Source: Macrostomum lignano
Taxonomy: Eukaryota
Length of the DNA stretch: 64,000 nucleotides
Direction: 5' to 3'
Assembly: GCA_002269645.1 (NCBI GenBank)
Contig: NIVC01000421.1
Coordinates: forward strand, 124,001-188,000
Shown here: in pieces, positions 9,506 through 61,578 of the stretch
How positions within the stretch are numbered: position 1 is the first letter of the stretch
Layout of the letters: each line of letters begins with the position of its first letter
Program-made: the position numbers and the translations under genes
The notes under the pieces: generated by a model
What the model was told of the DNA's origin: nothing
Database searches by the model: none
What the model saw: the letters and a program-made list of their open reading frames with translations, nothing else

Positions 9506-11792
9506 CTAATCGCAGAATAGAGTTTCCACCGTCTCTACCATTGAATTCCGTTGCGTCTTTCTGAAGAGCCCAACAAATTTTCGCCAGTAGCGCAAAAGAT
9601 CTGCAAACATTTGCCAGATGAAAATTATGTGATCGAACCGGGTCAATTGGTGCACCAAATCGAAGTTGGCCGCGATGCTTTTGAACTCGTTGGACACGTA
9701 GGCGATGAGGAAGTTCTGTATGTTGATGGTGACTATCAGAACGAACATCGTGTGCAGCATGGCTGTCGAAGGTCGAGCCTGGGACAAGTTGGCCGTGTTG
9801 ACGAAAATCCTCAGTGGCGAGTAGAACACGGAGAAGTGCGACTCAAACTCGGCCTTGTCGAAGTCGACCATGAAGAAGAGCGTGCCGAACACAAAGTAGG
9901 CCCAGATGAAGAACAGGGGCACGGCCGCGATGAACCGGCTGAACATCTTTCGAAAGCAGATTCCCAGGAAAGCGAATCGCTTGAACTTCAACTCGAACCC
10001 GCCGGTGAAGCAGAGCATGGCGAAGAACATGTACATCACAGCGGAGCCTTCTGTCACGTGTATAGCCCAGCTATTAGCATATCTTTTCGACCTGCCGAAT
10101 ACAAAGTCGGTGCAGTCGAGGGAGCTCATAAGCAAAATTGAGCCAATCAGATGCTGCAAGCCACAAATAAGCATTGCCGCCATTGAGACAGTGATGAATT
10201 CGTTCCTGACGAAGTACTCACCCCGGACTTTAAACCGGCTATCAATGCGGTACAGAGGAGATCTTTTTGCCAGACTAAATTTTGCTACTCCAAAAAGCAA
10301 AGCTAAAAACTTAATAAAAAGAATGCAGGCAATGATATATTGGTTGATGACGATATTTGACACCACATTCTTCCTAGTAGCGCAGTAGAAGTAGATTGGC
10401 GATGTCTTCACGCACGCAGCGCCTCGAGATCCGTTTTTCAGGAACCTGACTAAGTTATCTGGGCGGCAGGCACTTCGCACAGCATCTTCATTTCTGGCAT
10501 TTGAACTATTTGCATTTGCGTTCATATTGGGGAGGAATGCTTCTTTAATTTCATTTGCAAAGTCGTCGAAGCCTTTGTCCAATTCATAAGCATGCTGAGC
10601 CATCGCGACAAGCATTTTGAAGTTAAATGTCAACGGAGTCAGCTGGAAAAGCAAAAATCCAAAAAACATCGACACTACCAAGTATGTCCATCTCATATCA
10701 AGGTAAATTGTATTAATCCACTTGTCAACAAGAAGGCCAGCCTGCATCAGGTTCGATCTTCTCAGCGCCGGAACCTGCTGCATTCGAGTTTCGTTCAGCA
10801 TTAGAATCGGAGTCTTGCTTCTTCTAACCCCGAATGTCACGTCGTATTCCGATAGGTTGTACTTTTTATACACTCGAGTGCCTGTCAAGTGTTCTTCAAT
10901 CTTGATGTAGTTGTCAACTTCAGCAATTTTTTGGAATGTGCTGTACGCCCCGATTTGCATAGCGAACTCAATCGGTCTCAGGCCGGCTTTGTTCTCCATC
11001 AGGCAGAGCGCGTGAAGAAACGATTTGGGCTGCCTGTGGGTGTCGAAAAGAATGGCAATCATCTGATTGGTAATGCAAACAATAAAAGGCTTTTGAAAAC
11101 TTTTTGCAATCTAGATATTTCAATCAACAGCTAGCTAGATAAACAGCCGTCTAGATTGAAATCAATTTAAATCGGACTCCTCGGAATGAACTCCAGACGG
11201 CTCACTCTGTCCCGACTGGCAAGCCGCAGTATCCGGCCGCTGTCTCCTTGTCGCAGCTGCAGTTGGGCTCACCGACCTCGGCCAGGATTTTGAACGCGCC
11301 CGACTCGAACTCGTCCAGCAGCTGCAGCTCCGCCTCGGACGGCTCGCCGCCTCGCCGACCCTCTCGCAGGACTCGAGCTTTGGCCAGCGAGTGCAGCAGG
11401 TTGCTGCCGTCTGCATCGTCCAGAACGGCGAGCGACTTCCAGCAGCAACAGCTGGTCAGAGTCTTTCTGACCAGAAACTCCAGAGTTCGCCCAGCCGAGT
11501 AGTGAACTGCCAGGTGGTGCATCCGGCCGGATTCCGTCTCTGCATCGCTGCTGCTGGGCATGTTGAATGTCAAGCGGTGATGGAGCAACCGATCTGGTGG
11601 AATTTGAGCCAACTCGAGCTCTGCTGCCAGCTTGTCAGGCCGGTCTCTGCGGATGAGAGCAGCCAGACTGAGAGACAGTCGGTTGTCCAGCACACCGCTA
11701 TCATCGACAGAATCCTGCTCTGGAAGCCTTGAGCCGGACTCCGAATCTTCCAGTGTCACAGGAGCTACACGTATCTGCTTTGACGCAGCCAT
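9506..11792 (-). CDS. Divergent TRPV-like (ankyrin + 6TM) cation channel, copy a, about 690 aa; exons 11792-11277 and 11062-9506
   Basis: Ankyrin-like motifs (HHLAVHYS, DGSNLLHSLA, NKAGLRPIEFAMQIG), YNLSEYD linker, S4-S5 linker FLGICFRKMF, and S6 INIQNFLIAYVSNEF resemble TRPV5/6 (NxxGLTPFKLA, LYDLTEID, NLLIAMMGDT). A phase-0 intron 11063-11276 (AG|GTCGGT...CAG) joins the two ORFs. Confidence 0.8.
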
Positions 11793-13021
11793 AATCTGTC
11801 GAATATTTTAGGCCTATAAATGATTCGACAGAGAGCATGTCTTTCTGGACCGAACGAAGCTTTTTTAAAAGCTGCTTTGTTTGTCTAATAGCCAATTAAT
11901 TCTACGATTTTTCCTGTTAACTCAATTTGATTAGCGAAATAGGAATGGAAAAGACATATTTGACCAATTTGCCTAACCTAATGTGTGTGGTCCATACTGC
12001 AGTCACCCATCATTAATTTATTAGCCTTTCGTTCAACATTTGCGTGTCTTCGATCAATACGAATCGGGGCGCTTGGGTCAATATGGCGTATATTGTTTGA
12101 GCTGATCTCTAGCTACAGTGGCAATGCATGCAACTCTAATTTTGACCAAATGGATTTCTGTCTACTCAACAGCTTTGGCTACGCACTGCAATCTTCTAAG
12201 CATCATGCATATTTGACTACAGTACTAGTAAGTAAATTCATGGGGTCGCCATCATAAACCCGAAATATCATAACTCCGAAAACCAAAATAGTGTTGGACA
12301 TTGCTAGAAATTTTGGAGCTACATGTATGATATTTCGGGTTTATGATGGAAAGCGCTTTTCAGAGTCGTGATTTTTCGTGTTTGTGATGCCCCCTCCCCC
12401 AATTCATGGCTAATCACCTAGACAGATTGGTATTAATTTGATATATGAGAGACAGCTTATTATAATACGTTTTTATTTTACTGTTCCATTTAGCACTCTG
12501 CATACAATTTTAGTACTTTAGTACCCATAAATATTTTCCACGTTGGACACCATAACTTTGTTATATTCTTGATTACTAAACAGCTATAAGATAAATGTAA
12601 ATAAGTACAAAAAATGTAAATTCTGGTTGCCATCTGATCTGAAACACATGCACTTGTGTTTAGATGTGAGATCTGAGAAACAGACACAGACACGTATCTG
12701 ATCGGGATCGGCGTCTGATCACATTGCATAGACCCTCTCTGGTCGGACAGATAAAACATTTGTGCTTGCATGTTCACTTGCGTCTAAACTAATCCCCGGA
12801 TTTTTAAGTTTAAAGGTACAATATCTGATACTTTATGCTTGATAGGCGCAGTAACTGTCTGTGGCTTTCAAAGCTGATTTGACGTTAATACGTAATATAT
12901 CTCCTTCCAACTAAATAGTTGCAATAATTTTTTTGCTTGTCATCATAAAGTCTAAATTAAGAGTAAGAGTGTAATTGTTATCAAATCTAATAATTAAGTA
13001 ATCCAGGAGAGCAACAATCCG

Positions 13022-16000
13022 ATGCATTCTAATTCGGTTGAAGACGATCCCATTAAGTCGTCGGCTTCAAAGTGCCCGATGAAAGATTCGCTGAACAAAG
13101 TCGAGTCGCGAAGTGACGTCCGCGGTTATGTGAGCGACGATCCACAACTGCCGAAACGGGAGCTCGCGTTTTACCTGGTCGCCATGCTGTCCATTGTCAT
13201 CTATGCTGGCTACGAGTTTTACGTCACCTATGGACTCGACATGACGCGAAGTGAGCTGTTAATTGAAAATCGAAGATGACACACTCCGAACTACTTGTAG
13301 CTACAATGTAGTTCTTGCAGTTGGAAAATATTATGATAATTAGGTTCTCTGGACTCGTATTTTGTAAGCTGCAAACGAATGTTGTTGACGCTACAATTTT
13401 GTAGATTTTCCGGTTCAAGCATTAAAACGCGGTTGGATGAGAGATTACAAGGTAATCAAACTTTATAATTGTGTATTGATTTTTTCGTTATTACCAAATT
13501 TTGTTCCTCAAATTTATTCCACAGGACATTGTTGTTCACCCGATGTTTGAACAAGCGACAAACAACTGGCCTCAACTGATTCTGGCGTCTGCTGGTTTTC
13601 TCATAGTTAGCAAAACGTCGCTGGCATTTGCGCCAATGAATGTCAGTCTCCTTTTTACTAAGATTGTGTCATAAGTTCGCAAACAGAATAGACTGCAGAA
13701 AAAGCAAGCGGTGCTCAGTTTGAAACTCGGGTTAGATTTTCGGGTACGTCAGTGGCCTTCAGCTGCACACACTTGAGCAGCTTGCTGGTACAGTCAGCAA
13801 AGAATTCTTCGGGTGTCCTCTGTACCCCCCGTAGATTTCGAACCTCAGTGCAGACAGGCTGCTGTAGTGCTTCCCACGCAGTGGTTCCTCATCTCTAGGA
13901 GCAGTCAGTAATCGATGGGAGCCAGGTCAACAGCTTTGGCGCCCATGAACAACTAGCGTGTCATTCCCAACTGCTTCCCGGACAATGCGGTGAAAGAGAT
14001 CTTCAGTGGAATGTCCAAGCTGTCCTCAAACAGTCGCAGCTTCGATCTGCATCCATGATCTGCTGTTTATGATGCACGTTTCTTTCCATCGTTTCAGTTT
14101 GAGCAGCGTCAGTATACGCGCAGCATCCAAGCCGTCTTCGAACCACTGTAGATCCACTTTGACACCGTTGTTTCGAAAGCGTGTCTTCTTCCATGGCGAA
14201 TTCCAGCTCTGGAAAAATGTCCACCTGTGTGTGTTTTCCCGATCTTCACAAAAATCAAACTAAATATCGGTTTATGAATTTCGTATCTATGCTCCGTAGT
14301 TTTTCGAAAGGTGCTGCTTTAAAATTTAAAGTAGTTTGTGGAGAGGGTAAAATTAGGGTATAGGTCACCCATTATGCCTCTGTAGATCATTAAATGGCGG
14401 CTTATTTGTGTCTTGTGTCATGGAGCGGCCAGCATTTGTCAGCGAACTTACGACATAACACGCGTATCATTTCTATTATGTTGGCATTTTCTAACAGCAC
14501 AAAACACATAAACGTTGCTTACCATCGTACCAACCTTAGGTGCATCATCTGGCTTGCTCAATTTATACTCTGCTCATGATTAGCATCGCCCTGTCGACCA
14601 AAGCTGCGTTCGCCCTGGTCTTCCTGTACACTGTCTGCCTCTCCTTAGCCTACTTCTCTAATCCCGCCGTTTGGATCTTACCTAGCACTCTGCTCTTCTC
14701 TTTCAGCCGCGTAGAGGTGTCTGCAGTCCTGCTTTCTGCTCTGGAAATCCAGGATGATAAATTGAATACCTTTTCGGCAATGTCCAGCTACCTAATGTGC
14801 CGCCTGATCTCGGTTGGTCACACATTGAGAACGGAGCTGCTTGAGAAGCCGTGTGGATTTAGGCAATATTTGCTCAACAATGTTCCTCTGAGTCTGGCCT
14901 ACACTTTCTACATGCCCTACACGTGGTCCGGACCGATTCTTACTTTTGACGCGTTTCGCAAACAGCTGCAATCTCGCGGTCGTCGTGTTGAAATTGACAG
15001 CAATACTGTTTCTCTTGTGGCTTGGCGCGTGTGCCGCATGGTGCTGTGGTACTACGTTCTGGAGATGATCTATCACTACTTGCCAACGGGATCTTACCTG
15101 CTCACACTCCAACCCGATGTACCCATCGTGTACAAGCATATGTCTTTTTCTATCTACATACACGGTCAGAGCTTTATGCTTCTCTGCATTCAGTACTTCG
15201 GATGGCCAGCCGTCCTTGCTCTGCTCGATGGTGTTGAGCTGTTTCACTGGCCAGACTGCATCAGCTGGGTGTACAGCTACAGCATCATGTGGCGCGTGTT
15301 CGACCGAGGTCTGTTCTCAGTAATCCAGGAACACATCTACAGGCCTCTTGGAGGCAGTCGCCGGGGTCCATTGCGACAACTTTTAGCTCTGGTTGTCTCC
15401 TTCCTTTTGTCTGCATCTTCCACGGCGACAGCGCGAGCAGTCGAGCCTGGGTGACGCTGAATGTGGTTCAACTGGTGATGGAGCGGCTGATGATTTTTGT
15501 CTATTATAAATATCTGAGATGCGCTGTTGTAAGTCAATTAATGCTTGTGCGGGAGTTTCTATCTTATTTGGTTGCGTATACATTGCATACACTCGTAAAT
15601 ACTTGCACCATCTTTCAGACTAAGTACTTGAGTCCTCAGAATGAGAAGCGACTCACTGGCTACGTCATCGCTTGGAACATGACAGTCTCCTGCGGCATAA
15701 TCTTCTTCTTACTAGCCGGCACGAACGGCTTCATCATTTTTCCCGAGCTGCTGCTACTGCGCGGGATGAGTTCGCACAGTGAGTTTTGCTTTCACTAATT
15801 GTTGTCGACTGTCCATCGGTGCTTTGGTACTAACTTACTAATTACTATTGAAAATATACTTTTCCTTACTGTAACTTAGTAATATACAATATTAATAATT
15901 AAACTTTTTTACGAGTAGTATTTCATATTAATATAATTATTATAAATAAAAACATGCAGGTCCTGAGACGTTAGAGAAGGGGAAGGGGTAAAAAGCAGCA

Positions 16001-16911
16001 CTCGCAGAACCCAGCGGGCCTCTCCCGTCGCCCATGTCGGTGTACTTGGCTGATTTGCGGACCTCGACCGAGGTGGCAGGTGACTTGGGGCCCAGGTGTG
16101 CGTGATAGTCGCGTCCCAAGCCAACGGCAGCCCGCTCTCGAGAGCCGCCACCGTGGCGGCGTCGAAGCGGCGAGAGTCCCGCGCGGAGAGGCCGGCTGGT
16201 TCGAGTACCGATGGAAAGCCGGTCTCCACCAGGATGTCCCGGAGCCGCCAGTTGAGCTCGTCGTGTCGCCGGAAGCGCTCAACACCATATTTGCATGTGA
16301 GGGTGTTGATCACCTAGGGAATCGAGTGGCTGGCGGCACTCGCACACTCCAGTTGCCGCAGTTTGCAGACCGCGAGCCGCAGGCTAACGATGATGGACAG
16401 CTCGATGTCCGAGAGGTGCGTGCCCTCACGGCTGCTCAGCAGACCGGTAACAAAAGCCGGCTGACTCCGGGGTGGAGGCAGAGTGCAGCCTGGCCACGTC
16501 CCTGGGCTCCGCGAGGTTGGCAGGCAGCGCCTGATGGCGTGTGCGGAAAAGCGGCTCTTACCAGGAGCGGGCGGCAGGGGGCCCGCAGGTTCCGCAGGAA
16601 CTCTGGGGGTGTCTGGTAGAGCTCATTCACGAGTGGCACTGTAGCAGCTGCATGGGAAAAGAAAGCTGGCAGGGCGAGGTCTGGGGGTGCACAGATTCTA
16701 ATGCTTCTCAGACCCGTTGGCAGAGAGGCCTGCAGCCAATCTCGAGGATCATTTAAAATAGTGAATATTATTTTGAATTTCAGCTCCATTGTGGCACCTG
16801 TTAACTTTTCAATTCGGCACTTATTGCGCTGTACAGATGGGTCGCTATTTCGAGGTCAAGCTGAAGCCGAAGTTGTGCGATATAGCCAAGAAGGTCAAGA
16901 CTATGGATTGA
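13022..16911 (+). CDS. HHAT: HHAT-like MBOAT acyltransferase, copy a, with 1-nt deletion in exon 4 (pseudogene or assembly error); exons 13022-13250, 13405-13451, 13525-13641, 14540-15528, 15619-15778, 16784-16911
   Basis: Motifs LPKRELAFYL, FYMPYTWSGPILTF, MWRVFDRGL, IYRPLGGSR and FHG match HHAT/Rasp (LPRWELALYL, GPILSF, MWRYFDVGL, YIPVGGS, YWHG). Exon 4 is 989 nt versus 990 in copy b, with the missing base in T-run 15405-15408. Confidence 0.85.
15905..16760 (-). mobile_element. Degraded 3' fragment of a CRE-clade-like (restriction-like endonuclease) non-LTR retrotransposon in HHAT-a intron 5
   Basis: Translations WLQASLP..LRSIRI...DLALPAF and RHDELN...EPAGLSARDSRRFD...G.PLAWDATITHTWAPSH match the post-RT and PD-D/ExK region of RLE-type retrotransposons. 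The orthologous intron in copy b is only about 96 bp. Confidence 0.7.
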
Positions 16912-17880
16912 TGAGGCGTGCTGGTTACCATAGAAACTTCGATACGGATCTAATTTTAATAGTAGTGCTAAAATAATATTTCATTTAAGCTGACAGATAG
17001 AAAAAAATCTCCCAGACAGGTTAATCAAATATTTTAAAAGTAAAATACTGCTATTCATATGCCAACCAATCTATCAATCAATCACTACTATGACTTTTTG
17101 TATATCTGTCAGCTATTGTTGCGAATAAAAGTTTGGAAGTTAAATAGATAGTATCTTAGTTTACAATAATTTAAACCAAAATTTTATTGTATCTATTTGT
17201 TATTGTAACTCGTGCAGCAATCTGACGTGGAAGTTTCCGATGTCTATCGAAGTCACTCGCAAATATGTACTTTTACATTTTACCGACGTATAACGTCTGG
17301 TGGAATACGGAGGACGTAGGAGTATACTGCATGTTTTACTAGAATTTGTGGCTTAAGTGCATTTACAGTTTATACGAGTACAACACTAAGTTGAGTGGCT
17401 GTTAGAGTTTGTAGATATAATAATAACTTGTAACTTGTATTCTATTATGATAGAGGTCAATGACTCCTTCAGTTAAGTTAAAAAACTTTCGGTTCAATGT
17501 GTGTTTTCCAATCCCAACCCAAATGACGCGTTTAAAACTGGAAGCCCACAAGACTAACTGGAACTAGACCTAAATAAAACTGATTTTATAGCTAATCGGA
17601 AGAAATAACGCTTTTCTGTTGCTTGTATGAGCGACGTTTTCCGTTTTAATAAGTGCACAAGTATCATACTTTTGGGTAAGTAGCTATAGCTAGTTTTATT
17701 TAATAGACTAATCTATGAGGTGTTACTAATTTATGCTGCCTTTCTTGTCCTGCCTAAACAGTTATCCCACGCACGTCTTTGGCCCGAAGTTTTAACCAAC
17801 TATAGTCTAGCTAAATTCAGTTAAATTATTACTGGCATTTTAATTTCTTTTCTGTCTTTTTGCTTTGACAATGGTTAGCT

Positions 17881-19894
17881 GTCTATGGAAGAAATCATAT
17901 AGACAATATTATTGTCCTATTGATCAAGCCACTGACGAAGCGTGTGACAATCATGCATTGCTACATATGTGGCAATGCATGTCTAAATTAGACGTCTAGG
18001 GTCTGGTTTGAACCATAGACATAAGTAGCTGCAACAAAAAGCGAGGCCTTTTGTTGGGCAGAAAGAGGACAAAAGCGCAGTCCGAAGCCTTTGAGAATAC
18101 AAACACATTGCTAACTTATTTGACACTGGAGAAAGATGATCAACTGGAAGCATTTACCAGTAGAATCCCTCGATGGCGTTACATCAAGCGAATTGGCTCT
18201 GGTTACCGAACTGAGTCGGGAAGATCATAGTGAAGATAGAGAGCTACAACGCTTTCTTCAATTCATCTCCGACTTCAGTCGACATGACGATGACACCGTC
18301 ATGGGAGTGGAACTTCCTGATCTACCGGCTGCCGACAGTGACAATGCCGATGTGGGCGTTTCGATTGACGATGCTGAGAGTGCCCAAATTGATGCGATGG
18401 AAATTGCCTCGCTGCCTAGATCAACACGAGATCAGATGCAATTTCATGGACAAAGGTTTGCTGACTACATGTCCAATCTGGGTTACTCGGTGGATCGCCT
18501 ACAGACGGTAGACCAGGAGAAATTGAATGAGCATCTGCGTCTGTAATATTTTCGCCTGGCGAAGCCGATGTGGCGAAAAGTACTCTCGCATCAAGTCTGG
18601 TTTGCATAAGGGCTAGCTGGCATCCAGCGCTTTTTTAACAACATCATTAAGCGAAAAATCAACATCATGGATGCACCTGAATTCGGCAGCGCTAACCGTA
18701 TGCTGCAAATGAAAGTTCGAGAATATCATGCTGCAGGTGGAAGTGTGAAGCGCTTCGAACCGATTGAGGAAACTGACCTCAAGAAAATATTTGCGTACTT
18801 TGATCGATCCAATGGTGAACGATTACAGGATGAGGTACTCTTCACGCTGATGTATGTATTGGGTGAAAGAGGACAAGAACATATGAAGCAGCTGCGCCGT
18901 AGAGATAGTCTTATTGAAAAGACCGACAGTGATGGTAAGCCGTATTACGAGTTGCCAATGCTGCCGACAAAAAACCAAAGCGCCAAGCCGACACGAGCCA
19001 GGCGTTTCAATCCCAAACAAGCTCGATTGTACGGGAAGCAGTACGGCCTTCTACGTCTGTACATGTCCGTCCTTCCGTCTGAAACGAAAGATGACACTAT
19101 GTTCCCGCGACCAATGGCTAGTTCCGCTTTACAATTTGCTTTCTCAAGTAAGCAAGTCTAAGGCATAAACTGGCTATGTACGTAAATGCAGCGGATCAGC
19201 AAGATGTGCGGCCTGAGCAAGGGATATACAAACCACTGCATCCGCGTCACTCGAATTGCTGATCTGAAAGATTCAGGCCATTCTGTGTCTGACATCATGA
19301 GCATTACTGGCCAACAAACGGAGTCTACTGTGCGGCGGTATCTCTCCCGGAAGCATGACAGCGCCATTCGAGACATGGCAACTATTGTGGGGGCTGCGTT
19401 AGAACTACGCGGTGTGAATGCCGATAGCAGTGGTACCTGCGTCTCGACTAGCAGCAAAAGCATCATCGGCCACGAGACAACAACTGTTCGTGAGAATACC
19501 AATGCTGCAGTGTTCTCTAACTGCCAGTTCGCAAATTGCACGATCAGTATCAATAAGTAGTAGGAATACGTGACAGGGCAATAACATATGTGTTCACCAC
19601 GTTTTGTTGTACTAACATGAGTCGTATTTGCCTCGCTTTTTGCTTGTTGTTCTCATATTCATTCATATTCGTTTTCCCTGCGAAAATTGTCTGCACGCAA
19701 TCGTTAAACGCGTAACACGAGCCAATAAATATTAGACCATAGTCTATGGTCAAAATATCTGCTCTAGCGTGTGACAATCAGAAGCGTTGCCAGTAGGCTT
19801 GATCTATTTGACAATAAAATTATTAGAATGTGGTACACAGCAACTGTCAGACTTCGGTGACCTTGAAAGCTTTTCTTCAAGAACAGTCTATGGT
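17881..19894 (+). mobile_element. Inactivated Crypton-type tyrosine-recombinase element (DUF3504-like); coding remnant 18136-19560
   Basis: Motifs LGERGQE (catalytic R), YTNHCIRVT (HxxR), TGQQ..STVRRY (catalytic Y), and a reconstructable DGEKYSASSLVCIRAGIQRFF. In-frame stops lie at 18544-46, 19159-61 and 19183-85, with small indels near 18570-18620. Boundaries are approximate. Confidence 0.8.
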
Positions 19895-26209: not shown

Positions 26210-26649
26210 GTCCCGATTTTAAGTGGCTTTGCTTCATCCATAGCTGACTTGCTTAAATAGTCCCTTCCAGCCTTCCCTTGCCTATCACCAACCTTGATTA
26301 ATCTTCAGAAAGCTTTTAAGTTAATGAGTTAGTTTGTAGACTAAGGCCATTTTTGGTAGTGCAATTTCGGCTAATCAATCAGTGAGTCCATTGTTGTGCT
26401 ATTCAGCTATGCATTAATATTTGCTGCCGTCAAATCAGTCAGTTGAGTTAGAGTCCAATCTTCATAATTGTTTGCTTGACGTAATTGAATTGTTTTTTCT
26501 CTCAGATCAACTGCATAGAAATCAATCTAAATGATTGTTTTCTCTGCTGGAAAAACATGGGAAGTCGATCGATGGGAAAACGGTGTTTTGTGTTTACTTA
26601 CGCTGCTGCGTCGCCGTCGGGGTTGACTTCGACTTCGTAAAGACTCCAA

Positions 26650-26760
26650 AGCAGCCAGAAGAGTTGATTCTACCTGATCCAGTTCGCGCAGCTCGAGTGG
26701 TTCTTTATGTAGATGATTTAATGATTCTTGCTAAGCGTCCTCTGCGGCATTCGGCAAACC
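26650..26760 (+). mobile_element. Possible reverse-transcriptase remnant (VVLYVDDLMILAK)
   Basis: YVDD motif in a hydrophobic beta-strand context. No other RT motifs were recognised. Confidence 0.3.
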
Positions 26761-26964
26761 CCAGAAATGTTGTCATTTTTACCTGTCTCTCGTCGGGAGA
26801 TAAAGGGTTACTCGTATATAGCTTATTATTGACGAGACCAGAAAGGGCCTGTCAACTTAAGCTTATAAAGTGGAGCCTGAGTAAGCTATGTACACAAATG
26901 ATACGTAATTCTGCTCACAGTGACACCAGGAAGCTGGATTTGGCAAAAAAGTGACAAAAATTGG

Positions 26965-27076
26965 ACCTGGGATAGAAGAGAACAAGTATGGGGATAATTA
27001 GGGACGATTATGTAAACTTCAGCTCGTAAGTCGGAGTCCCTAATTATCCCTTTGCTTGTTCTCTTCTATCCCAGGT
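26965..27076. mobile_element. 112-bp hairpin MITE
   Basis: acctgggatagaagagaacaag...gggataattagggac pairs with gtccctaattatccc...cttgttctcttctatcccaggt. No clear TSD. Confidence 0.7.
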
Positions 27077-28399
27077 GGATAAACTTGTGACTTGCGCCTA
27101 GGACGAAACGATCCTTGCTTTATTTGGTGAGACACTGAGCTAGGATTCAGTGTTTAAAAACTTAAAACTTGCCATCTCGCCCATCCAGGACGCCCATCCA
27201 GTTTGCACGATCTGCGGGTGTAGCATTCTGCATCGAAGCAATGGATGCCTATAAAAACCTAATTTGTCCTTGAGCAAAGTTATACTACGGAACAACTCTG
27301 ATTCGAACCACTCCGGAGTCCCTGATTTTCCACTGAGTAATCACAAACCGATTTGTAACGGTTTGAAAAAAAATCTTGCCACTTTAAAAATATGCAAACC
27401 AACCGGCGTACAAGCTAGAAAGACGAAAAAAGAGACAAATTAAGACCTCTGAATCTCAATGGGAACATGCAGAATTTCCATAGCAAATTAATTAACTGCT
27501 ACATGTATTTCAATTCCTATAAAATTCCAACTCGTCGCAGCCACGCAGAAGTAGCAACTGAAATTCGTCGTGTTTCAACGTTCGCACTTGATTCGTGAAG
27601 TAATTAATCTTAGAACTCCTGGAAAATCCATTAACCGATCAAGGTAAGCTGCTTGCCATTCAGAAGCTTTATTGAATGGGACTTCACACTGCATGACTGA
27701 CTTTTCCCGTTTTGAAATCTTCAGACAGATATAGACGATATGCGAATTACTAAGAAAACTAAACAAAATATATTCCTCAATTTTGATTTGCTTGATAATT
27801 TTCCTTTGTTTGAATAAATACCCCACGAGGACTGGCCTAAGTATGCTAGTTCAGTAGCTTAAACGCTCATCGAACGTTTTTTGTTTTCAAAAATTTCTAA
27901 AGTGCTGATTATCAATTGATAGTATGTGTTTAGGACTGTATAGTGTGCTTGCGGGTGGAGAAAATAATGGTCTGATCGTGGATCGCATATTTGAGATATT
28001 ATATAGAATCACTGCCAACGTGCAGCTATAATCTACGCATTAGTTGGGAGTGGCCATGAGTACTAGTGCACGTTGGTCGGGAGGGCTATAGCTAGTCAGA
28101 GAGAAGCGTGAAGACGTAGAGGGGGCGGCACGTCTCTCCAATAAAAAAATACAAGCCTATGACTCGATAATTTCGCAGATAAGCGGAACGAGCTTTCGGA
28201 ACAGTTACATGTATGCCAATCAGCGGTTAAGTTAAATTTACGTATGCATGTACATGTGATTTATTCGGGGTGCGGCCGTGTTGCTATGGCCTTGTGGTTT
28301 GCTGACGTGTTGACATCCAGCCCGTAGACCTCCCAGAGGCCGTCGCAAAACTTCGATCACCTCCTGGCGGAGCGCCGATTAGAAGTAGCAGCGTGCGCC

Positions 28400-28950
28400 G
28401 TCTGGCCACCAACTGAACATCCGCCTCCCCTGCTATCTCTGCCGTTTGCTGTTGGCTGGCTGAGAGCGTCTTTCGCGCGCCACCGCCTCCGGTCTCCTGG
28501 TGCTGGCGTCTCCTTTACAGAACCGCCTGCGGCTGCCGCGCCATGCCGGGCCACCAGAATTCCTCTGCAGCCGGTCAATGGCCTTCCTCCTGCCAAATGG
28601 GGCCAACTGATGGTCTGCTGCTGAAACCCTGCGGGTACAACGATCTTGCTGTCCCTGAGCAGCATGCCGGCACGCACCCTGAGCTCTCCGTTGAGCGAGT
28701 GGAAGCTGCCGACCGAGGCTTCCGGTGCGGACTTCCTGGTGTTGAGCTGCTGCAGCAATACTCTGTCCTGGGCCGGTTGCTCGTCCTTTGGAGCGTCGAT
28801 TGGCCTTGTAGCCTCTCTGGCAGGTGCCCAGGCCTGCGTCCCAAGACTCAGCAGCTGCAGGGATGTCAAGGTTGCACGGCCGAGCACACTGGTGCCGCTC
28901 CGTGAGAAGATGATGAAGCTGACGAGCTGGACATAAAAAAATCCTCTTTG
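28400..28950 (-). mobile_element. Degraded LTR-retrotransposon pol fragment (RNaseH-integrase junction)
   Basis: The translation ELRVRAGMLLRDSKIVVP...QTISWPH resembles the Ty3/Gypsy-Bel EL.V.DG.LLRG.RIVIP...IL..LH segment preceding the integrase zinc finger. It is frameshifted. Confidence 0.5.
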
Positions 28951-29650
28951 TCATTGGCTGCAGGCCTGGGGGTCACGGTAGCTTTCGCCAGGCTGCCTCA
29001 GTGAGGATGTTACAGTAGGCTCCGCTATCCACCAGCACCTTGGTAAGAGCCGCTGCAACGTTCGTGTCGTAGGCCATCGCGGAGTACTACAATGAGTAAA
29101 TCTGCATGTGTATTGTGTGTAGAAATTCTGAGGAGCAGCTTTAGTTGTGCCACATACAAAACTGAGGCAGAATTTGTCTTGTCCTTCATAGCGTGGAAAC
29201 TTCTCATGTTGCCAAGTTTATTTTAATGTGGATTTATCAACAAGTAAACTATGAGCATACGAGTATTGTACTTATAATTTATGTAATTGTACAAGAATAC
29301 GTAGACAAAATCAAAATGCAGATTGCAAAGCTTGAATTGAGCTTTTGGTTTCTGATGATAAGCATCTCAATGGTTGGATTTACTGTTCAGTACGAGCGAA
29401 CAGAATTATTTAGCAGGAAATGATGTAATAATCTTCACGATCCAGCGCTCGGTTGGACTGTTCTGAATTCTGTCTGATGTCTATGGCTTTTTCTCTTTCA
29501 AATTCAGCTACAATTTTATGTCTATGGCTGGAACTAATCTTTATAAGCAGCTTCGATTTTTCTAAACCCATCACTGTATAACGTCTCTCTCTAACTGTCT
29601 GACTTTCAATCTGTGCTTTATTTAGCTAAACCACCAAAAAGGACGGCAGC

Positions 29651-32600
29651 ATGCAAGACCGAGAAAGCATAGAAGCTGAAGTTACTGAACAATCTGAATC
29701 AAAGTGCCCAATGTACGACTCGACCACAAAGACCAAACAGCAGCAGAATCCAATTCATGGATTCGTCTCTGATGATCCTCAGTTACCGAAACGGGAGATT
29801 GCTTTCTACCTGGTCGCGCTGGTGTCAATCATCGCCTACGCTGGCCACGGGTTTTATCTCACGTACGGAATCAACCTGCATGAAAGTGAGTTAGTTGTTT
29901 CCTTCTATGTTTGGATCGACTAATAATACACATTTTAACAGTGTTTTTGGGCAGAACCACAGATACTTCTAGAATAACTAGATGGTCCACTCAGAAAATT
30001 TGCGTGTAAACTACTTTCAGTTCAGTAGCAAGTTAAACTGAAGCATTTTAATGTATTTTTAAAGCCAAAGCTTCTTTATTGGCTCTTACCCTCCAGCCTT
30101 AAACCCTCCAACCGCGCCTTTCCACACTGCCCCCACCCGCGCACCCCAATTTTATTGCCTTCCTCGGAATTCCAACTAGCTCGTTCTTGCTTCTTCAGGA
30201 ATCGATCACGTACGCGCTCAATTAACAATCGATTTAGGCACATATTGATTCCCAATCCGGTCCATAATTTGCAGATCTTCGCTGGTTAGCTCAGGCAGCA
30301 CTTTAGTGTAGCTCATTTAATGATGATGATGTAACCACGCTCTGGTCGCGGGATAGGGCATGGGAACTTTTTTCGAAAGTGCCTCCTATCCCGTGCACCC
30401 CTGCGCAGAGCTGTCGAGACTCGGCCAGGTCTCCGACCAGGCCTGGAGACTCCCGCTCTGCTGCACCCCTCCTGCTGCCTTGGTTCCGTCTCCCCTGCCG
30501 CCACACCTGCCTTTCCGGAGCTCCCCACCCCTCTCTGTATCTCCCCCTCTACCCTATCTCTTCTGTTTTTCGCCCTATTCTTCCTGTACTTTCCCTATCC
30601 CCCCTCTTTTCGTCTCCCTCTGCACTCTTTTCCTGCGCTGTCCCCCCTTTCCCTGTGTCTACTTACAGTATTTTGTGTGCCCACCGTCTCCCCATCCCCT
30701 CTCAAACTCCCAAACGGTGACGCAAGTCGTGTGACCCCTTCTCCCCCTCGGTGACTCATCGATGACTCATCCCCCTCTCTTGCGCAACCTTTTCTCACGC
30801 TATTGTTCTCCTTCCCAAATTTCTCATGCGACACCCACCCCACCCCCGCTTCTATTGTTCTCGTTTTTGATTCTTTTTTCTCTCGACCCCCACCAATTAT
30901 CACATTTTCTCCGATTTTCTCCTTCTTTTGTTCTCGTTTTCGCACCTAATTATCACCTTTTCCCCAATGTTTACTTTTCCATTGTTCTCAGTTCTCCCCA
31001 ATTATCCCCGATTTCCAATTCCTTTGTTCTCGACCCCAGCCCTATTGTTCTCAATGTTTGCTTGCGCAACACTTTCGCGACCACCCGCTGCGCCAATTAT
31101 CCCCCCACCCCACCTCCGGATTGCGCAATTTCCCGATTTCTCATGTTGCTATGCCGGTCTCATGCTTCTCATCATGACTCATTCTGACGTCATTCTGCCG
31201 GCAGCCAATCAGAGAGAGGGAGCCATGGTAACGACCTTGAGGAGGCGGCTGTGAGGTCTATAAAAGGAAGCGATTTCGGCATGAGAATCCTCACCCTTTC
31301 GGCTCCTCGTCCTTCTTTGGACTTGCTGTCAGACTGAGTTCTGACCCATTCGTCTATAAGACGAATCCCTGCCGGTCCGCGGTCTGTTACCGCCAAGTTA
31401 TTGGCTCCCCAAGTGAGCTCGCCTATCGGCCAGCGGTCTGAAACCGCCCAGCATCATCAGCATCGCCTGATCTACATCCGCGCCTCGTCGCTTCAGCGCA
31501 TCGCCCCTTCACCGTCTGCCTGACTGCAGCCTACAGCCGCCCTCGGTCACTCCGCCTCTCTCTCTCTCTCTGTGCAGCTGCCGGTAAGTTCCTATTACTA
31601 ATTTGTGCTCTAATCGCCTTGCTTATCCGGGGTTTGCCTATTTTTCCATTGTCTGATTAGAGAGCTGAGCCAATTGTGATACCGTAACCTTTTGCTGTAT
31701 TTTACTCAATAGTGAAGCCGCCTAATTGCCTGATTATTCGCCTAAGGGCCTAATTATTAACTATTAACTAACTCCATCATTATTCACTTTCAACCATCAT
31801 TTCACTCATGGCTTGCTAAGCCTTTCTCCCGGGGTGGCAAAGCATAAGGAAGTTTGGGTAAGCTAATGGCCTCTCCCCGTGCACAGCCCGCCTGTGAGTG
31901 CGTGCTGCGGGGCCGCGTGTGCGTGCAGTAGGGGGATTAGCGAGTCTTGGCACAGAATGGCAGTAGGAAGGTTGCAACCCCATGCTGACGCGTCCCTTCG
32001 CCCTGAGCAATCTAAACTATAGACAGTACATGTTCGCCTCATACTACTCTTAGTAATCAAAGTCGCAAGTTAGCCTCGCTCACAGCCACAAAGGATCCCC
32101 TGCTGAGAAATCCTCCAGGTTGAGCCCAGAGTTCCCGATCATGCCCCAAGCAGAGTCCCTGTACTCGGCTGCATGTGTCTCCCCTGTTAGCCTAAATCTC
32201 CTGGTAACCATCCCAGGCGGGGCTCTAGCCTCGAGAGGTCTGGTAGAAAGATCCAGGTGTGCCAGGTCACATAGAGTGGTGGCAGCCACTCGGTCATACT
32301 ATGACCGAGTGACCAACTATTGCACCTTGGCTACAGGTGGGGTCCATGTGGGTCCTTGGCCCTCTGGTCACGAAGCGCTACCAAAGCTACTAATCATGTG
32401 GGCGGGACAGTCTGGTGCTGGAGGTCCGTCAGGCCATTGCCCGGTCATAGGCAGCCTACGGTCATTGCCCCCTCTAGTCATGCGTTCGTCTCTCTACGGA
32501 GCGGACCGGCGACAAGGGCGGTTACATCAATGACTCATTTTTCTATTGGTATTTCAAATGAAAGCTCAAAATCCACTAGAAAATTAATTATGACAGTTAG

Positions 32601-35600
32601 GCTAGTCGCCTTTACTGTCCTTTCCAATTAACATAGACGATTGTCTGATGATCTCTATTCTACTCCTTCAAAGTGCCATAGACAGAAGAGTTGACTAGAA
32701 ATCCGGAAACAATCATATTTGATACAAAAGGGTACAATAACGACATTAGATTCTTTCGCGGCAGCGCTTGCGTAAGCTAAAAATCCGTAAATATCGTTAC
32801 ATTGCATAAGGGTTAGTAGCAACGTCTGACTAAAAAAATTCACTTCTCCTAAAAACACTAGCTGTTAAAAGGTATGTTAAAAACAACAGATACATTAACA
32901 ACATCAACATTATCGATAAAATAGGCAACAGAAACATCAATAAAAATATTATCAACAACCACGACAACAACAAATAGCAAATTATCAAAACAACATATAA
33001 AACAGCGAAAAAAACATTAGTAACAACAGTAAGTCAATATCGACCAATACCAAGAAGGAGCAACAACAAAAAGGACCAGACATAAAGCAAGGACGACTTA
33101 AGTAGAAGGACGGGAAACCTCGTTTCTTAGAAAATTTTTGAAGGCACTTTTTCCCGAAAAAATACACTGCGGAGATAGGAAATTTTCATTTTTTCAGCAC
33201 AAAAATTGCTATAACTTTTGATAGGAGGCAGATCCAGTGTTGATCTTTTGATATGTTGTGCCTTTTTTATTGCTCTATCGATATTTGTAAAGCTTTTCGT
33301 TCAGAAAATTAGGATTCTATGTTAATTTTTTATTCTACGTATATTTCCTGTTTCTAAAAATCACAATAATGCATGACACAGCTCTAATATTTGGTTTTAT
33401 GAATCTATTTTATCATCTCTGTTACGAATATTTGCTATACAGTCAGGTAAGAAGGATAAAATAGACTCATAAAATCAAAGAGCCAAGCCGTGGCATTCTA
33501 ATGTATTTCAAGCACAAGACACATGAAAATATACGTAGAATAAAAAATTAACATAGAATCCTAATTTTCTGAACTAAAAGCTTTATAAATATCGATAGAG
33601 CAATAAAAAAGGCACAACATATCAAAAGATCAACACTGGATCTGCCTCCTATCAAAAGTTATAGCAATTTTTGTGCTGAAAAAATGAAATTTTCCTATCT
33701 CCGCAGTGTATTTTTTCGGGAAAAAGTGCCTTCAAAAATTTTCTAAGAAACGAGGTTTCCCGTCCTTCTACTTAAGTCGTCCTTGACATAAAGATGCTTT
33801 TTAAAAGGCAAATTTAAATAAATTTGAACTTGAACTCGAAAAGTATCCACAGTAAAAACTCGAATCCATTTGAAAAAGCTGTTAGCAATTCATTTAATTA
33901 AAATTCTGTTAACATTTTAACAAAACTATTTACTCGGTGACGCAACCCGGCCAATGTTCTAAAGGAATTTGCCGAGACTGATAAGCTAAGCATTGTTCCT
34001 TCACTACCAATTAAAGTACAATCAAAGCCTTAGCTTTGGTCTAAAGTAAATTGATTCAATCACAAGCTGACGAGTGCTTCTGATCCTGATAGCCAACTGA
34101 GGGAGCGCGCCAAACTTTACACAGTTCTCAAAGTGTATGGGAAATTTCAAGGTTTTTTTCAATAGGCTTACGGTAATCCGGCTTAACGAGGCCATAAATA
34201 TTGATGGGAGAGGGCGCCAGCACCAAGGGGCGCCAGCACCAAGGGGCTTTAGCACCAAGGGGCTTTAGCACCAAGGGGCGCCAGCATCAAGGGGCGCCAG
34301 CACCAAGGGGCGCCAGCACCAAGGGGCGCCAGCACCAAGGGGCGCCAGCACCAAGGGGCGCCAGCACCAAAGGAAAATATTCTAGACAAAGTTACTTGTA
34401 CATATTTCTATCAACTATTTGCTTCAGATCTACCGGCTGAGCTTTTGAAACCCGGCTGGATGCGCGATTTCAAGGTAAGCTTAAATTGAATTAATCAGCT
34501 TTGAGTTTCGCGTTTATAAAAGTTTTACCAATTTATTGTAAAAAAGCAAATCTATAAATCTGTCCCCAACGCAGGATGGAAGCGCTGATGCTCTGCTTGA
34601 AAAGTCGACAGAAAATTGGAAGAATTTGTTGGTTGCATTAGCTGGATTTCTGCTTGTCAGCAAAGCTTCTTTGGCAACTGCGCCTATCGAGGTGAGCATA
34701 TTGTACTTTTGTTATTGACGGAACACTTTTTTTCTTAGAAAGTTTCAAAGGTCATCCCATACAACCAATAAAATTTAGTCAATCCATGCATTTTCACCTT
34801 CAAATATTTTCTAAGAATAAATCGGCTTAACATTATTTTATTTAATGCGTACCTGACTTGAGTGTGCAAACGTGAACTCGAGATAACTACATGAAATGAA
34901 TTCAAGTCAATTTTCAAACCTTGCAGTTGCACTACCTAGTTTGCTCCGCCTACGCTCTGATGCTCGTTTTTCTAGCTGTGTCATTCGAAGCCGTTCTGTG
35001 GCTGATAGTTGCCTATTTTGTAACTCTCTGCCTGGCCTACTGGTCTTTCCTAGCCGTGTGGATCTTTGTTGGCTCGCTGCTTTACGTCATGAACAGCCAC
35101 GGTGCGGCGACACTATTTCTAGACTACCTCAACATTGACGGTGACAGCGGGCCAACCTTTGCGGCCTTGTATGGCTACGCGCTCTGCCGATTTATCTCGC
35201 TTGGCCACGCTATGCAGCAAGAGCTGAGTGGTGAACTAAAAACTGCAGGATTCTGGCGGTACCTTCGCTCGAATTTGTTTCTAACTCTGCACTATTCGTT
35301 CTACATGCCCTACCTTTGGTGCGGACCAATTTTAACGTACGACGATTTTTGTAAACAGTTGAAAGTTCGAGCTCGCAACATCGCTGTTGATGGTCGGACG
35401 GCTAGTTTGGTCGCTTGGCGCGCCTGTCGGCTGGTGTTTTGGTACTGCATTCTGGAGATTATCTATCACAATCTTCCAGTTGGAACCTATTTGGATCTTC
35501 TAAGTCCCGATGATGCTATCGTGTACAAGCACCTGGCTTTTGCAATGTTTTTTCACGGTCAGATCTTCATGCTGCTGTACGTGCAGTACTACGGATGGCC

Positions 35601-37087
35601 GGCCGCTCTCGCCCTTCTGGACGGCATTCAGCTGTTCCATTGGCCAGACTGCATCAGCTGGGTGTACAGCTACAGCATCATGTGGCGCGTGTTCGACCGA
35701 GGTCTGTTCGCCATGATGCGGTCGCACCTGTACATACCGCTCGGTGGTAGCCGCCATGGCCCCGTCCGTCAAATGTTGGCCATCATGGCTACGTTTGCTT
35801 TCATCAGCTTGTTCCACGGCGACTCAACCAACGTGCGCGCCTGGGCAGCGTTGAATTTTTGTCAACTGCTAATTGAACGTTGTGCCGCTTTTGTCTACTA
35901 TAGTCACGCGAGAAGCATTGTGGTAAGTTCATTGCTCAGCTTTTTCAGAGCCAGAATCTAGTTCAAAGTCAGGGCCTTTTAGTACAACCCTGCGTGACGG
36001 TTTGCCTGCGTGCGTATCCGCGTGAGCCTGCTTCAATTCAGTCAGAGGCACAGACATGACTGCTTGTCTCTCTCGCTTGTAGTTGACATGGGTTGAGTGA
36101 ACATGTACCATGCATACTCAATATTTTATCACAGAAGCCTGCACTGTTATTAAATATTGTTTAACCCGTTTTCATCTTTCAGAAAAGGTACTTGAGCCCG
36201 CAAAACGAGAAGCGTTTAATTGGCTACATAATCGCTTGGAATATGATGGCCTCCTGCGGCATCATCTTCTTCTTTCTATCCGGCATGAACGGATTCATCA
36301 TATTTCCGGAGTTTCTGCTTCTAAGATCAAATAGTCGCCATAGTGAGTTCGATTTATTTATTTTGATCAAGTTTATTTGCATGTAAATATTGTCTTAATC
36401 AAGATTCGATGGTTAGTAGCTCTGGGTGTAAGGATTCAGGATCTGGCTGAATGAATCTTGGACCCATCGATAGGAAGGACCTTGAACGACGATGATGTTA
36501 GCGTACATCTATCTCTTCTAGTGGCTACAGAAATTTATACTCGTAGCTACACTATGTGTTTATGTATATATTGTAATACTATTTTGTGGTACTAATGGGG
36601 TCACCCGTACAGCAATCCGACACGTCTGGCCGATCAAACTACATCGACATATAACGACGTCATACGTCTACTGAATGTCGGTGCAATGTAAAAGTACATA
36701 TTTGTCATCGAACGCCGGATGTCGCCGACATCGGATTGCTGTACGGGTCGGTTTTCACACATTTTCACGACATTTCACATCGTCGAAGACGGTAAACTTC
36801 ACAAGCTCGAGTTTTCATACTTATAAGTTCGAAATTCATTGACAAAAGTGACTAGCAAAACTTTTGACAATATGAAAAATTTTGAACTTGGGAAGCTATA
36901 ATAAATGTATCACCAGAAGAAAAATCTTTCCCGCATCACAATTAAAACGTATCCATTTCGATTGGATTTTGCAGCACCCGTGTGGCACATGCTGACCATG
37001 CAGTTTGCCGCCTATTGTGCCGTTCAAATTGGCCGCTACTACGAGGCCAAATTAAAGCCGTCTCTGTGCAAGCATGTCAAGGAGTGA
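29651..37087 (+). CDS. HHAT: HHAT-like MBOAT acyltransferase, copy c, intact, 555 aa; exons 29651-29885, 34428-34474, 34575-34691, 34927-35922, 36183-36342, 36975-37087
   Basis: Exon sizes 47, 117 and 160 nt are identical to copies a and b, phases are conserved, and MWRVFDRGL and FHG are present. The spliced length is 1668 nt. Confidence 0.9.
30327..32529 (+). mobile_element. Solo LTR (2.2 kb) in HHAT-c intron 1
   Basis: TG...CA ends with a 10-bp inverted repeat TGATGTAACC / GGTTACATCA and a 4-bp TSD atga on both sides. An internal promoter cluster lies on the + strand, and no gag/pol is present. Confidence 0.8.
31175..31265 (+). promoter_or_regulatory. LTR U3 promoter cluster: AP-1 (TGACTCA 31175), CRE (TGACGTCA 31185), CCAAT (31205), TATAAAA (31259)
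   Basis: Motifs were read directly and fall in canonical order and spacing. Activity is not shown. Confidence 0.6.
33088..33785. mobile_element. 698-bp foldback MITE with about 260-bp near-perfect TIRs, hAT-type TSD
   Basis: CAAGGACGACTTAAGTAG...CTACTTAAGTCGTCCTTG with 8-bp TSD acataaag (33080-33087 and 33786-33793). Confidence 0.9.
34212..34370. repeat. 17-bp GC-rich tandem repeat (gcgccagcaccaagggg), about 9 copies
   Basis: Direct reading. Confidence 0.9.
36603..36748. mobile_element. 146-bp MITE in HHAT-c intron 5
   Basis: 18-bp TIR acccgtacagcaatccga / tcggattgctgtacgggt. Confidence 0.75.

Positions 37088-60746: not shown

Positions 60747-61578
<832 letters not shown>

Follow-up and report, generated by a model that had tools for sequence, protein, structure and literature searches.

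The acyltransferase HHAT (Rasp) is usually encoded by a single-copy gene and palmitoylates Hedgehog. Its active site opens to the ER lumen, the N-terminal cysteine of secreted proteins being its target. TRPV channels, for their part, have most of their protein in the cytosol and are modulated by lipids. Macrostomum lignano, a flatworm, is a neopolyploid which is hard to assemble (PMC10733133) and for which a recent whole-genome duplication has been documented (PMC5704211, PMC10733133). A canonical TRPV, separate from the channels described below, is located elsewhere in its genome (PMC5196486), and a sister family of TRPV, named TRPVL, has been published (PMC12980990). The window analyzed here (64,000 nucleotides) is 100% identical to the M. 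lignano contig NIVC01000421.1 and contains a real, old tandem cluster of three HHAT-type genes, among which lie two channel genes that are related to TRPV but very divergent.

Layout of the five-gene array

9506-11792, minus strand: TRPV-a
11206-11792, minus strand: TRPV-a exon 1, aa 1-196, ankyrin-repeat region
11034-11205, minus strand: TRPV-a intron, GT-AG
9506-11033, minus strand: TRPV-a exon 2, aa 196-704 including the stop, continuous ORF
11793-13021: TRPV-a/HHAT-a head-to-head spacer, 1229 bp
13022-16911, plus strand: HHAT-a, six exons (13022-13250, 13405-13451, 13525-13641, 14540-15528, 15619-15778, 16784-16911), from tblastn with P0005, DNA alignment and exon solving
17832-19816, plus strand: inserted element between HHAT-a and HHAT-b
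20036-23388, plus strand: HHAT-b (NCBI Mlig008875g1, P0004), 557 aa, intact; exons 20036-20264, 20730-20776, 20904-21020, 21094-22083, 23002-23161, 23258-23388
23835-26209, minus strand: TRPV-b
25616-26209, minus strand: TRPV-b exon 1, ATG at 26209
23835-25421, minus strand: TRPV-b exon 2, frame-shifted in the S2-S3 region
26210-29650: TRPV-b/HHAT-c head-to-head spacer, 3441 bp
29651-37087, plus strand: HHAT-c (NCBI Mlig019414g2, P0002), 555 aa, intact; exons 29651-29885, 34428-34474, 34575-34691, 34927-35922, 36183-36342, 36975-37087

The gene order, strands and spacings of an earlier, sequence-only reading of this DNA are borne out by the ORFs and by exon solving. TRPV-a and HHAT-a are divergent, with 1229 bp between their start codons at 11792 and 13022; for TRPV-b (start codon at 26209) and HHAT-c (at 29651) the distance is 3441 bp, in agreement with the earlier estimates of about 1.2 and 3.4 kb. 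Spliced translation of HHAT-b and HHAT-c, the only array genes called in the NCBI annotation of the contig, reproduces P0004 and P0002, respectively, with 0 mismatches. The splice junction of TRPV-a, derived from the sequence, is the same as in the UniRef model P0001, and in TRPV-b a methionine at 26203, just inside the ATG, aligns to the TRPV-a start. The gap preceding the main HHAT-c coding block is mostly the first intron of this gene (29886-34427), which spans 4.5 kb and is pyrimidine-rich in composition around 30-31.3 kb.

The element inserted between HHAT-a and HHAT-b contains one long frame (~18136-19560) interrupted by four in-frame stops. It is missing from a collinear locus on a second contig (L001), which supports its mobility. 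The frame matches Pfam Phage_integrase below threshold (E=0.067, 13.4 bits for a cut-off of 27.1 bits), over profile positions 113-167 only, which correspond to the C-terminal catalytic part, and XerA with E=0.67. It is possibly a decayed tyrosine-recombinase (Crypton-like) element, the integrase assignment of the "dead YR element" initially described being sub-threshold. The "retro-debris" reported in the TRPV-b/HHAT-c spacer obtained no Pfam support, as its short ORFs matched no Pfam family.

Identity of the acyltransferases and channels

HHAT-a, HHAT-b and HHAT-c match the Pfam MBOAT family (PF03062) with 44.8, 45.4 and 60.6 bits (gathering cut-off, 27 bits). Among PDB sequences at E<=1, human HHAT (7MHY, 7Q1U and 7URF) was the sole match of HHAT-c (E=5e-24), with no PORCN, GOAT, DltB, ACAT or DGAT. 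The three proteins contain the Asp (FDRG) and His (FHGD) residues, as claimed previously, the His of HHAT-a lying after a 1-bp frameshift as assembled. The CIS..MWRVFDRGL....FHGD motifs are unchanged in every M. lignano HHAT paralogue, and no catalytic residue varies among five M. lignano paralogues and the HHAT of Lingula and Elysia. As in HHAT/Rasp, the M. lignano copies share the MBOAT domain, a catalytic core ~30-35% identical, a similar length (~555 aa) and equivalents of Asp339, His379, the heme-binding Cys324 and the gate residue Trp335. On the basis of these residues, the copies are predicted to be active acyltransferases.

In contrast to the usual single HHAT gene, M. lignano possesses at least five types of paralogues, each doubled again by whole-genome duplication: a, b and c in the array, d and e on NIVC01004183.1. 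In a neighbor-joining tree of few taxa, in which fungal GUP1 alone, and no metazoan HHATL, stood outside the HHAT clade, the five paralogues form one lineage-specific clade, sister to lophotrochozoan HHAT (Lingula, sea slug). None of these related types is obviously the single canonical copy. That these paralogues have been freed from Hedgehog is speculation.

The channels are very divergent. A TRPV-like M. lignano protein gave no match in Pfam (E<=10), including Ion_trans and Ank, nor among PDB sequences (E<=10). HMMER nevertheless retrieved relatives, such as Lineus P0073 (E=1.5e-16); Ion_trans is matched by 12 of 35 channel relatives and Ank by some. The profile of these 35 relatives matches TRPV6, TRPV5, TRPV3 and TRPV4 with E-values from 1.7e-44 (TRPV6) to 8e-29, and hhalign connects TRPV-a to it with a probability of 99.8% (E=3e-29, 522 columns). 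In the AlphaFold model of TRPV-a (pLDDT 73.2, pTM 0.75), residues 240-255 and 695-701 form strands and residues 653-683 a helix; the best 50 Foldseek matches in the PDB are all TRPV-family proteins (probability 1.0, TM ~0.45-0.66). Profile-profile comparison and structure prediction therefore place these ankyrin and six-helix proteins next to TRPV channels, and they are predicted to form cation channels. The label "TRPV-like" holds as remote homology and as a fold match, direct Pfam or PDB sequence support being absent.

In TRPV-a, exon 2 codes for the last part of the ankyrin domain, then for the beta-linker, for S1-S6 and the pore helix, and for the TRP-like helix and C-terminal strand. The likeness to TRPV5/6, TRPV1-4 and Nanchung/Inactive, and to the sister family TRPVL, extends to the N-terminal ankyrin-repeat domain, the beta-sheet linker with a YD/EYD motif, the six transmembrane helices and pore helix, a conserved S6 Asn-Phe-Leu-Ile-Ala motif, and the TRP-like helix followed by a C-terminal beta strand. 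However, the M. lignano protein is just 10-13% identical to solved TRPVs. The family pore consensus LNMvD aligns to VNTAN in TRPV-a, so that the acidic residue is replaced by Asn, and the TRP-box Trp is missing from the hhalign alignment, where the region reads LVHQLTRF. Neither the pore-filter acidic residue nor the TRP-box Trp is universal among TRPV relatives.

A second genomic copy, gene conversion and frameshifts

L001 carries TRPV-a', HHAT-a', HHAT-b' and TRPV-b' in the same order as the window, with dS of 0.06-0.10 (~0.07) and 92-96% identity between copies, which fits an origin of this second copy in the known recent genome duplication. Given that the M. lignano genome is difficult to assemble (PMC10733133), the array might be an artefact in which haplotypes or homeologues were left uncollapsed and placed one after the other by mistake, an explanation we find hardly credible. 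Haplotypes or homeologues diverge by just dS ~0.07, whereas the paralogues, which exceed dS 1 in unconverted segments, differ in their introns, lie in unrelated flanks and recur in the same order on an independent contig. This artefact, put forward in the sequence-only reading as what would overturn it, is excluded since a single contig carries the paralogues in tandem and a separate second copy exists for the array itself.

The array paralogues are old, as dS is above 1 wherever they have not been homogenized: ~1.5-1.7 in unconverted TRPV-a/b segments and ~1.35-1.5 for HHAT-a and HHAT-b against HHAT-c. They are under purifying selection, dN/dS being 0.14-0.39 in the main exons and reaching 0.79 in the short HHAT exon 1. 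Overall dS is lower (0.35 for HHAT-a/b and 0.47 for TRPV-a/b), and synonymous divergence falls to 0.056 between the first exons of TRPV-a and TRPV-b. Sites at which paralogues of one locus agree with each other against their other-locus counterparts are clustered in tracts of 97-100% identity. For TRPV, the counts are 19 versus 1 within these tracts and 6 versus 313 elsewhere; for HHAT, they are 5 versus 0 and 3 versus 213, respectively. The paralogues of each locus have thus been partly homogenized by repeated gene conversion, which affected the ankyrin domain and the pore region in the channels and the catalytic core in HHAT.

Two genes are frame-shifted as assembled, which the sequence-only reading had overlooked. 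In HHAT-a, a T run (~15404-15408) just ahead of the catalytic His has lost 1 bp, which puts the His-containing segment out of frame, and the exons sum to 1670 nt, one under a multiple of three. In TRPV-b, a 1-bp deletion (~24614-24619) shifts the frame within S2-S3. The L001 counterparts are intact (P0005 for HHAT-a', a single frame for TRPV-b'), and for this reason both frameshifts probably arose as errors of the assembly or else very recently. With intact counterparts on L001 and only HHAT-b and HHAT-c called by NCBI on NIVC01000421.1, the lesions could instead be real and the redundant copies be turning into pseudogenes by reciprocal gene loss after the whole-genome duplication. We consider such a decaying cluster unlikely: each gene bears just one lesion, comparison of HHAT-a and TRPV-b with their intact counterparts gives a low dN/dS (0.22 and 0.19), and the HHAT-a lesion falls within a homopolymer, in an assembly made from long reads. 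Moreover, P0118, a model from an older, independent assembly, has HHAT-a-specific residues and reads in frame through the deletion site as ...VVSFLSVCIFHGD. In a decaying cluster, the working genes here would be TRPV-a, HHAT-b and HHAT-c alone.

Origin and meaning of the channel-acyltransferase adjacency

The adjacency of the two gene types likely reflects shared descent, and not a functional module, in an old Macrostomum-lineage tandem cluster produced by local duplication of neighbors, an HHAT-type MBOAT and a divergent TRPV-related channel. In the most economical history, an ancestral head-to-head pair [TRPV(-), HHAT(+)] would have been duplicated in tandem to give TRPV-a, HHAT-a, TRPV-b and HHAT-c, HHAT-a would then have been duplicated into HHAT-b, and, much later, the recent M. 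lignano whole-genome duplication would have copied the whole five-gene array. Since then, the paralogues have evolved under purifying selection, with partial homogenization by gene conversion within each locus. Co-duplication of the unit, as proposed in the sequence-only reading, fits the observed order, and the two families show a comparable saturation of divergence. Gene conversion also blurs dating and, together with dS saturation, leaves the order of duplications without a firm basis; we infer it from economy, and the overall dS values of HHAT-a/b and TRPV-a/b could fit two separate later events too.

The two head-to-head spacers (11793-13021 and 26210-29650) have no detectable similarity, and the alignment of TRPV-a with TRPV-b fails from just upstream of the ATG. 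Spacer length also differs between genomic copies, L001 carrying 2.9 kb in place of positions 12551-12828 within the TRPV-a/HHAT-a spacer. These observations argue against a functional module, akin to one raised in the sequence-only reading, in which the channel and HHAT of each head-to-head pair would be co-transcribed in the same (sensory) cells, HHAT lipidating the channel, an accessory subunit or a secreted ligand gating it, and the pair being kept and co-duplicated by selection. Such a module, which we judge quite improbable, would be consistent with the recurrence of the head-to-head pair (n=2), purifying selection on both families, the catalytic residues kept in every HHAT copy and the lipid modulation of TRPV channels. 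Likewise, both TRPV-like paralogues found in M. lignano sit in the array or its duplicate and all TRPV-like copies detected adjoin HHAT genes, yet all descend from one locus. However, HHAT-b has no head-to-head channel partner, and the ER-lumenal active site of HHAT is at odds with a mostly cytosolic channel. Nor does the pairing recur: there is no TRPV-like gene within 10 kb of the HHAT-d/e tandem pair, and, in a synteny check confined to distant relatives, none of four TRPV-like loci (Lineus and three others) has an HHAT within 10 kb.

Functional coupling of the two gene types is therefore currently unsupported, and neutral local duplication of neighbors within a lineage-specific HHAT expansion, the alternative offered by the sequence-only reading, is the better-supported explanation. 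A bolder version, a flatworm-specific signaling pair in which an orphan TRPV-related lineage stays linked head-to-head with expanded, catalytically competent HHAT paralogues that now lipidate a channel ligand or subunit instead of serving Hedgehog, appears very doubtful. If true, the coupling would be of interest, as an acyltransferase-channel module would be encoded in the genome.

The presence of at least five conserved, apparently active HHAT types in one flatworm suggests further N-acylation substrates. Counts of the invertebrate TRP repertoire are also concerned, since the channels belong to a TRPV-related lineage whose divergence hides it from standard domain searches. Finally, the locus illustrates cleanly how gene conversion can act separately in each copy of a neopolyploid genome. 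As in other tandem arrays under concerted evolution, near-identity tracts alternate with deeply diverged segments, in which context within-locus paralogues are nearer to each other than to their duplicated-locus counterparts. Unlike such arrays, the M. lignano cluster interleaves two unrelated families, and conversion has proceeded independently in each family and in each genomic copy.

Gene models and layout of the array

The window matches contig NIVC01000421.1 of the M. lignano assembly GCA_002269645.1 with 100% identity across 23,353 bases. An ORF listing combined with a Pfam scan of the window identified three MBOAT-domain ORFs, all on the + strand (HHAT-a, HHAT-b and HHAT-c), and two long - strand ORFs (TRPV-a and TRPV-b) for which no Pfam match was obtained. 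HHAT-b (Mlig008875g1, protein P0004) and HHAT-c (Mlig019414g2, protein P0002) were both reproduced by GT-AG spliced translation with 0 mismatches, and TRPV-a encodes 704 aa from two exons, in agreement with the UniRef fragment P0001. The array of acyltransferase and channel genes proposed by a sequence-only reading is confirmed, with some caveats. The TRPV-a (11792) and HHAT-a (13022) starts are separated by 1229 bp, and those of TRPV-b (26209) and HHAT-c by 3441 bp, the latter being near the ~3.4 kb initially claimed. The first exon of HHAT-c is located as follows:

29651-29885, + strand, HHAT-c exon 1, followed by a 4.5-kb intron

As assembled, HHAT-a is one T short in a T run at ~15404-15408, which places its His-containing segment out of frame, and TRPV-b is one base short at ~24614-24619. 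Their counterparts on a second M. lignano contig, NIVC01000215.1 (L001), are intact. The low dN/dS against these counterparts (0.22 for HHAT-a and 0.19 for TRPV-b), the homopolymer run at the HHAT-a lesion and the in-frame passage through this site of P0118, an older-assembly model carrying HHAT-a-specific residues, suggest that the two genes are not old pseudogenes and that the lesions are errors of the assembly or of very recent origin.

In the NCBI annotation of NIVC01000421.1, HHAT-a and both TRPV-like genes are uncalled, while two UniRef models from the older assembly, P0117 and P0118, fuse HHAT-a and HHAT-b into single proteins of 903 and 734 aa, respectively. Intron 1 of HHAT-c contains a pyrimidine-rich, low-complexity stretch (30000-31300; GC skew -0.28, AT skew -0.26) in which spurious ORFs overlap on both strands. 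Intron 5 of HHAT-a (15779-16783) is 1 kb long and has GC-rich ORFs that overlap on the two strands (15909-16789) and lack Pfam matches; this large intron is common to the L001 copy, the intron of HHAT-b at the same position is only 96 bp, and an old inserted element is possibly involved.

Identity of the channels and acyltransferases

Direct searches with the M. lignano channel protein retrieved no PDB sequence match and, with the threshold relaxed to E<=10, no Pfam family, and a word-indexed homologue search returned only an M. lignano fragment. Exhaustive HMMER searches, profile comparison and structure prediction were therefore used. HMMER found 44 proteins, the best match outside Macrostomum being an uncharacterised protein of Lineus longissimus (E=1.5e-16). 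Among 35 aligned relatives, 12 have a Pfam Ion_trans match and several match ankyrin families; their profile aligns with TRPV6, 5, 3 and 4 (E from 1.7e-44 to about 1e-28) and, using hhalign, with TRPV-a (99.8% probability, E=3e-29, 522 columns). The AlphaFold model of TRPV-a, built on the alignment with these relatives (pLDDT 73, pTM 0.75), contains an ankyrin domain and a two-strand linker as well as a C-terminal strand; its membrane part has six helices and a pore helix, and a TRP-like helix is also present. The best 50 Foldseek PDB matches to this model are all TRPV1/3/4/5/6 or Nanchung-Inactive (probability 1.0, 10-13% identity). The hhalign alignment also revealed that TRPV-a has an Asn in the pore motif where the family of its relatives has an acidic residue, and that the TRP-box Trp is absent. 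The initial description of divergent TRPV-like channels is therefore supported by the alignments and the predicted model as fold and remote homology, but not as canonical TRPV membership.

An apparent third M. lignano channel paralogue, P0072 (60% identity), was judged by eye to be a corrupted gene model of the copies already described; it is on record in no contig. In the distant relatives, the TRPV-like genes have a single exon and also occur in tandem arrays:

L. longissimus OU342994.1, 7058-8407 and 10001-12559: TRPV-like copies, inside an intron of an opposite-strand globin-domain gene
L007, another locus of distant relatives, 1402-3285, 10001-11755 and 17801-19633: TRPV-like tandem copies

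The only PDB matches to HHAT-c are the human HHAT structures 7MHY, 7Q1U and 7URF (E=5e-24). At least five HHAT paralogue types are present in M. lignano:

HHAT-a, HHAT-b and HHAT-c: in the window
HHAT-d (P0007) and HHAT-e (P0006): in tandem on NIVC01004183.1, 10001-28095

The equivalents of Cys324, Trp335, Asp339 and His379 are kept in all five types; the proposed retention of the Asp and His thus holds in every copy, the His segment of HHAT-a being frameshifted as assembled. A small NJ tree, thinly sampled and built with metazoan HHATL not included, grouped the five proteins in a single clade whose sister is the HHAT of Lingula and the sea slug, fungal GUP1 lying outside. This single clade points to a lineage-specific expansion in which a single canonical copy is not obvious. 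Almost all the matches listed in an HHAT-profile homologue search were M. lignano proteins, and no literature on HHAT in Macrostomum was found. P0007 is encoded by a 12-kb gene, in which one intron takes up ~8 kb.

Second genomic copy and history of the paralogues

On the L001 contig, TRPV-a', HHAT-a', HHAT-b' and TRPV-b' follow one another as in the window, at 92-96% identity and a synonymous divergence of 0.06-0.10, which fits the recent whole-genome duplication documented for M. lignano (PMC5704211, PMC10733133). This collinear copy establishes that the array is real and predates that duplication, and rules out uncollapsed haplotypes, which had been named as a possible refutation. The two copies also differ by a large insertion/deletion (L001 14130-15080 against window 17335-17336). 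A UPF0556-domain gene (7989-8309, + strand; Pfam E=2.5e-22) is the upstream neighbour of the array and also lies beside the second copy, with matches to L001 1-2655.

Within the window, self-comparison gave 87% identity between TRPV-a and TRPV-b, 92-96% in the alignable exons of HHAT-a and HHAT-b, and ~78% between these two and HHAT-c over a 300-bp core. The following segments were compared:

11206-11792 and 25616-26203, - strand, TRPV
9506-11033 and 23835-25421, - strand, TRPV
14540-15528 and 21094-22083, + strand, HHAT

Between the TRPV paralogues, dS reaches 1.5-1.7 in the S1-S2 region but is 0.056 for exon 1 and 0.03-0.05 for two stretches of exon 2. Homogenisation affects the ankyrin and pore regions, S1-S2 remaining at dS ~1.5. 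Similarly, exon 4 of HHAT-a/b has dS values between 0.05 and 1.12. For exon 1 of TRPV-a, the TRPV-b copy on the same contig (dS 0.056) is a closer match than the one on the other contig (0.109). Four-sequence site patterns, in which agreement of paralogues within a locus against the other locus was compared with orthology-type sites, showed that the former cluster in 97-100% identical tracts: 19 vs 1 sites inside and 6 vs 313 outside for TRPV, and 5 vs 0 inside and 3 vs 213 outside for HHAT, Fisher tests on these counts being indicative only as the tracts were picked after the data were seen. Gene conversion between the tandem paralogues thus continued after separation of the window and L001 loci. 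The HHAT-d/e pair exhibits the same mosaic: aa identity is 40% where the large exon begins, against 98-100% for the catalytic core.

Given this mosaic, dS over whole genes was rejected as a means of dating the duplications. In unconverted parts, HHAT-a and HHAT-b share 52% aa identity and either shares 44-48% with HHAT-c; since the first two are barely closer to each other than to the third, all the duplications are old and a firm order is not obtainable. The observed gene order fits a scenario in which a [TRPV, HHAT] unit would have been duplicated, followed by duplication of HHAT-a. The main exons have dN/dS values of 0.14-0.39, and only the short exon 1 of HHAT goes as high as 0.79, which indicates purifying selection overall.

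Surroundings of the array and pairing of enzyme and channel

The segment at 17832-19816, proposed to be a dead YR element, is absent from L001 and contains a single long frame interrupted by four in-frame stops, but its integrase match is below threshold; this assignment is plausible, if weakly supported. Retro-debris had also been claimed, and Pfam scans of spacer and intron ORFs gave it no support, retrieving no reverse-transcriptase or other transposon domains.

Elsewhere in the window, an ORF (47965-48576, + strand) contains a RAWUL domain (E=9e-14), which is found at the C-terminus of Polycomb-group RING finger proteins, and probably represents one exon of a PCGF-like gene located between satellite blocks. 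A secreted protein may be encoded by a 243-aa ORF (883-1614, - strand), which is Cys-rich, has a hydrophobic N-terminus and weakly matches the PAN domain (E=0.002). Numerous distinct tandem-repeat or satellite blocks are present, several with strong strand composition skew (e.g., GC skew +0.44 at 44-46 kb), and the long ORFs within them are repeat artefacts.

Repeat blocks in the window
2170-3210
40800-43500
47300-47930
48590-48920
49120-49520
50150-50690
50910-51590
51870-52780
55990-56850
58720-59400
59830-60500
60720-61660

The sequence-only reading had raised the possibility that the enzyme-channel pair is a co-duplicated, co-regulated module, with neutral segmental duplication of neighbours as an equal alternative. 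Co-duplication of neighbouring genes is plausible from the gene order, but a functional enzyme-channel module is unsupported and seems unlikely. A sensitive blastn search for promoter elements, with words as short as 7 bases, revealed no similarity among three regions, both head-to-head spacers and the sequence upstream of HHAT-b, and the TRPV-a/TRPV-b alignment is lost just upstream of the ATG. A compact bidirectional promoter between TRPV-a and HHAT-a is not conserved, since 2.9 kb of the L001 spacer (6908-9806) replace 277 bp of the window (12551-12828). The pairing was not found elsewhere: within 10 kb, the HHAT-d/e locus contains no TRPV-like sequence, and no HHAT-like sequence accompanies the two tandem TRPV-like copies of Lineus or the TRPV-like genes at three further loci of relatives, one of which has three tandem copies.

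A literature search with the locus tags of the array genes retrieved no paper. A canonical TRPV, separate from the array genes, exists in M. lignano (PMC5196486), and TRPVL has been published as a sister family of TRPV (PMC12980990). Collectively, the array genes add divergent members to known families and lie in an old tandem cluster patched by gene conversion and copied again by whole-genome duplication.
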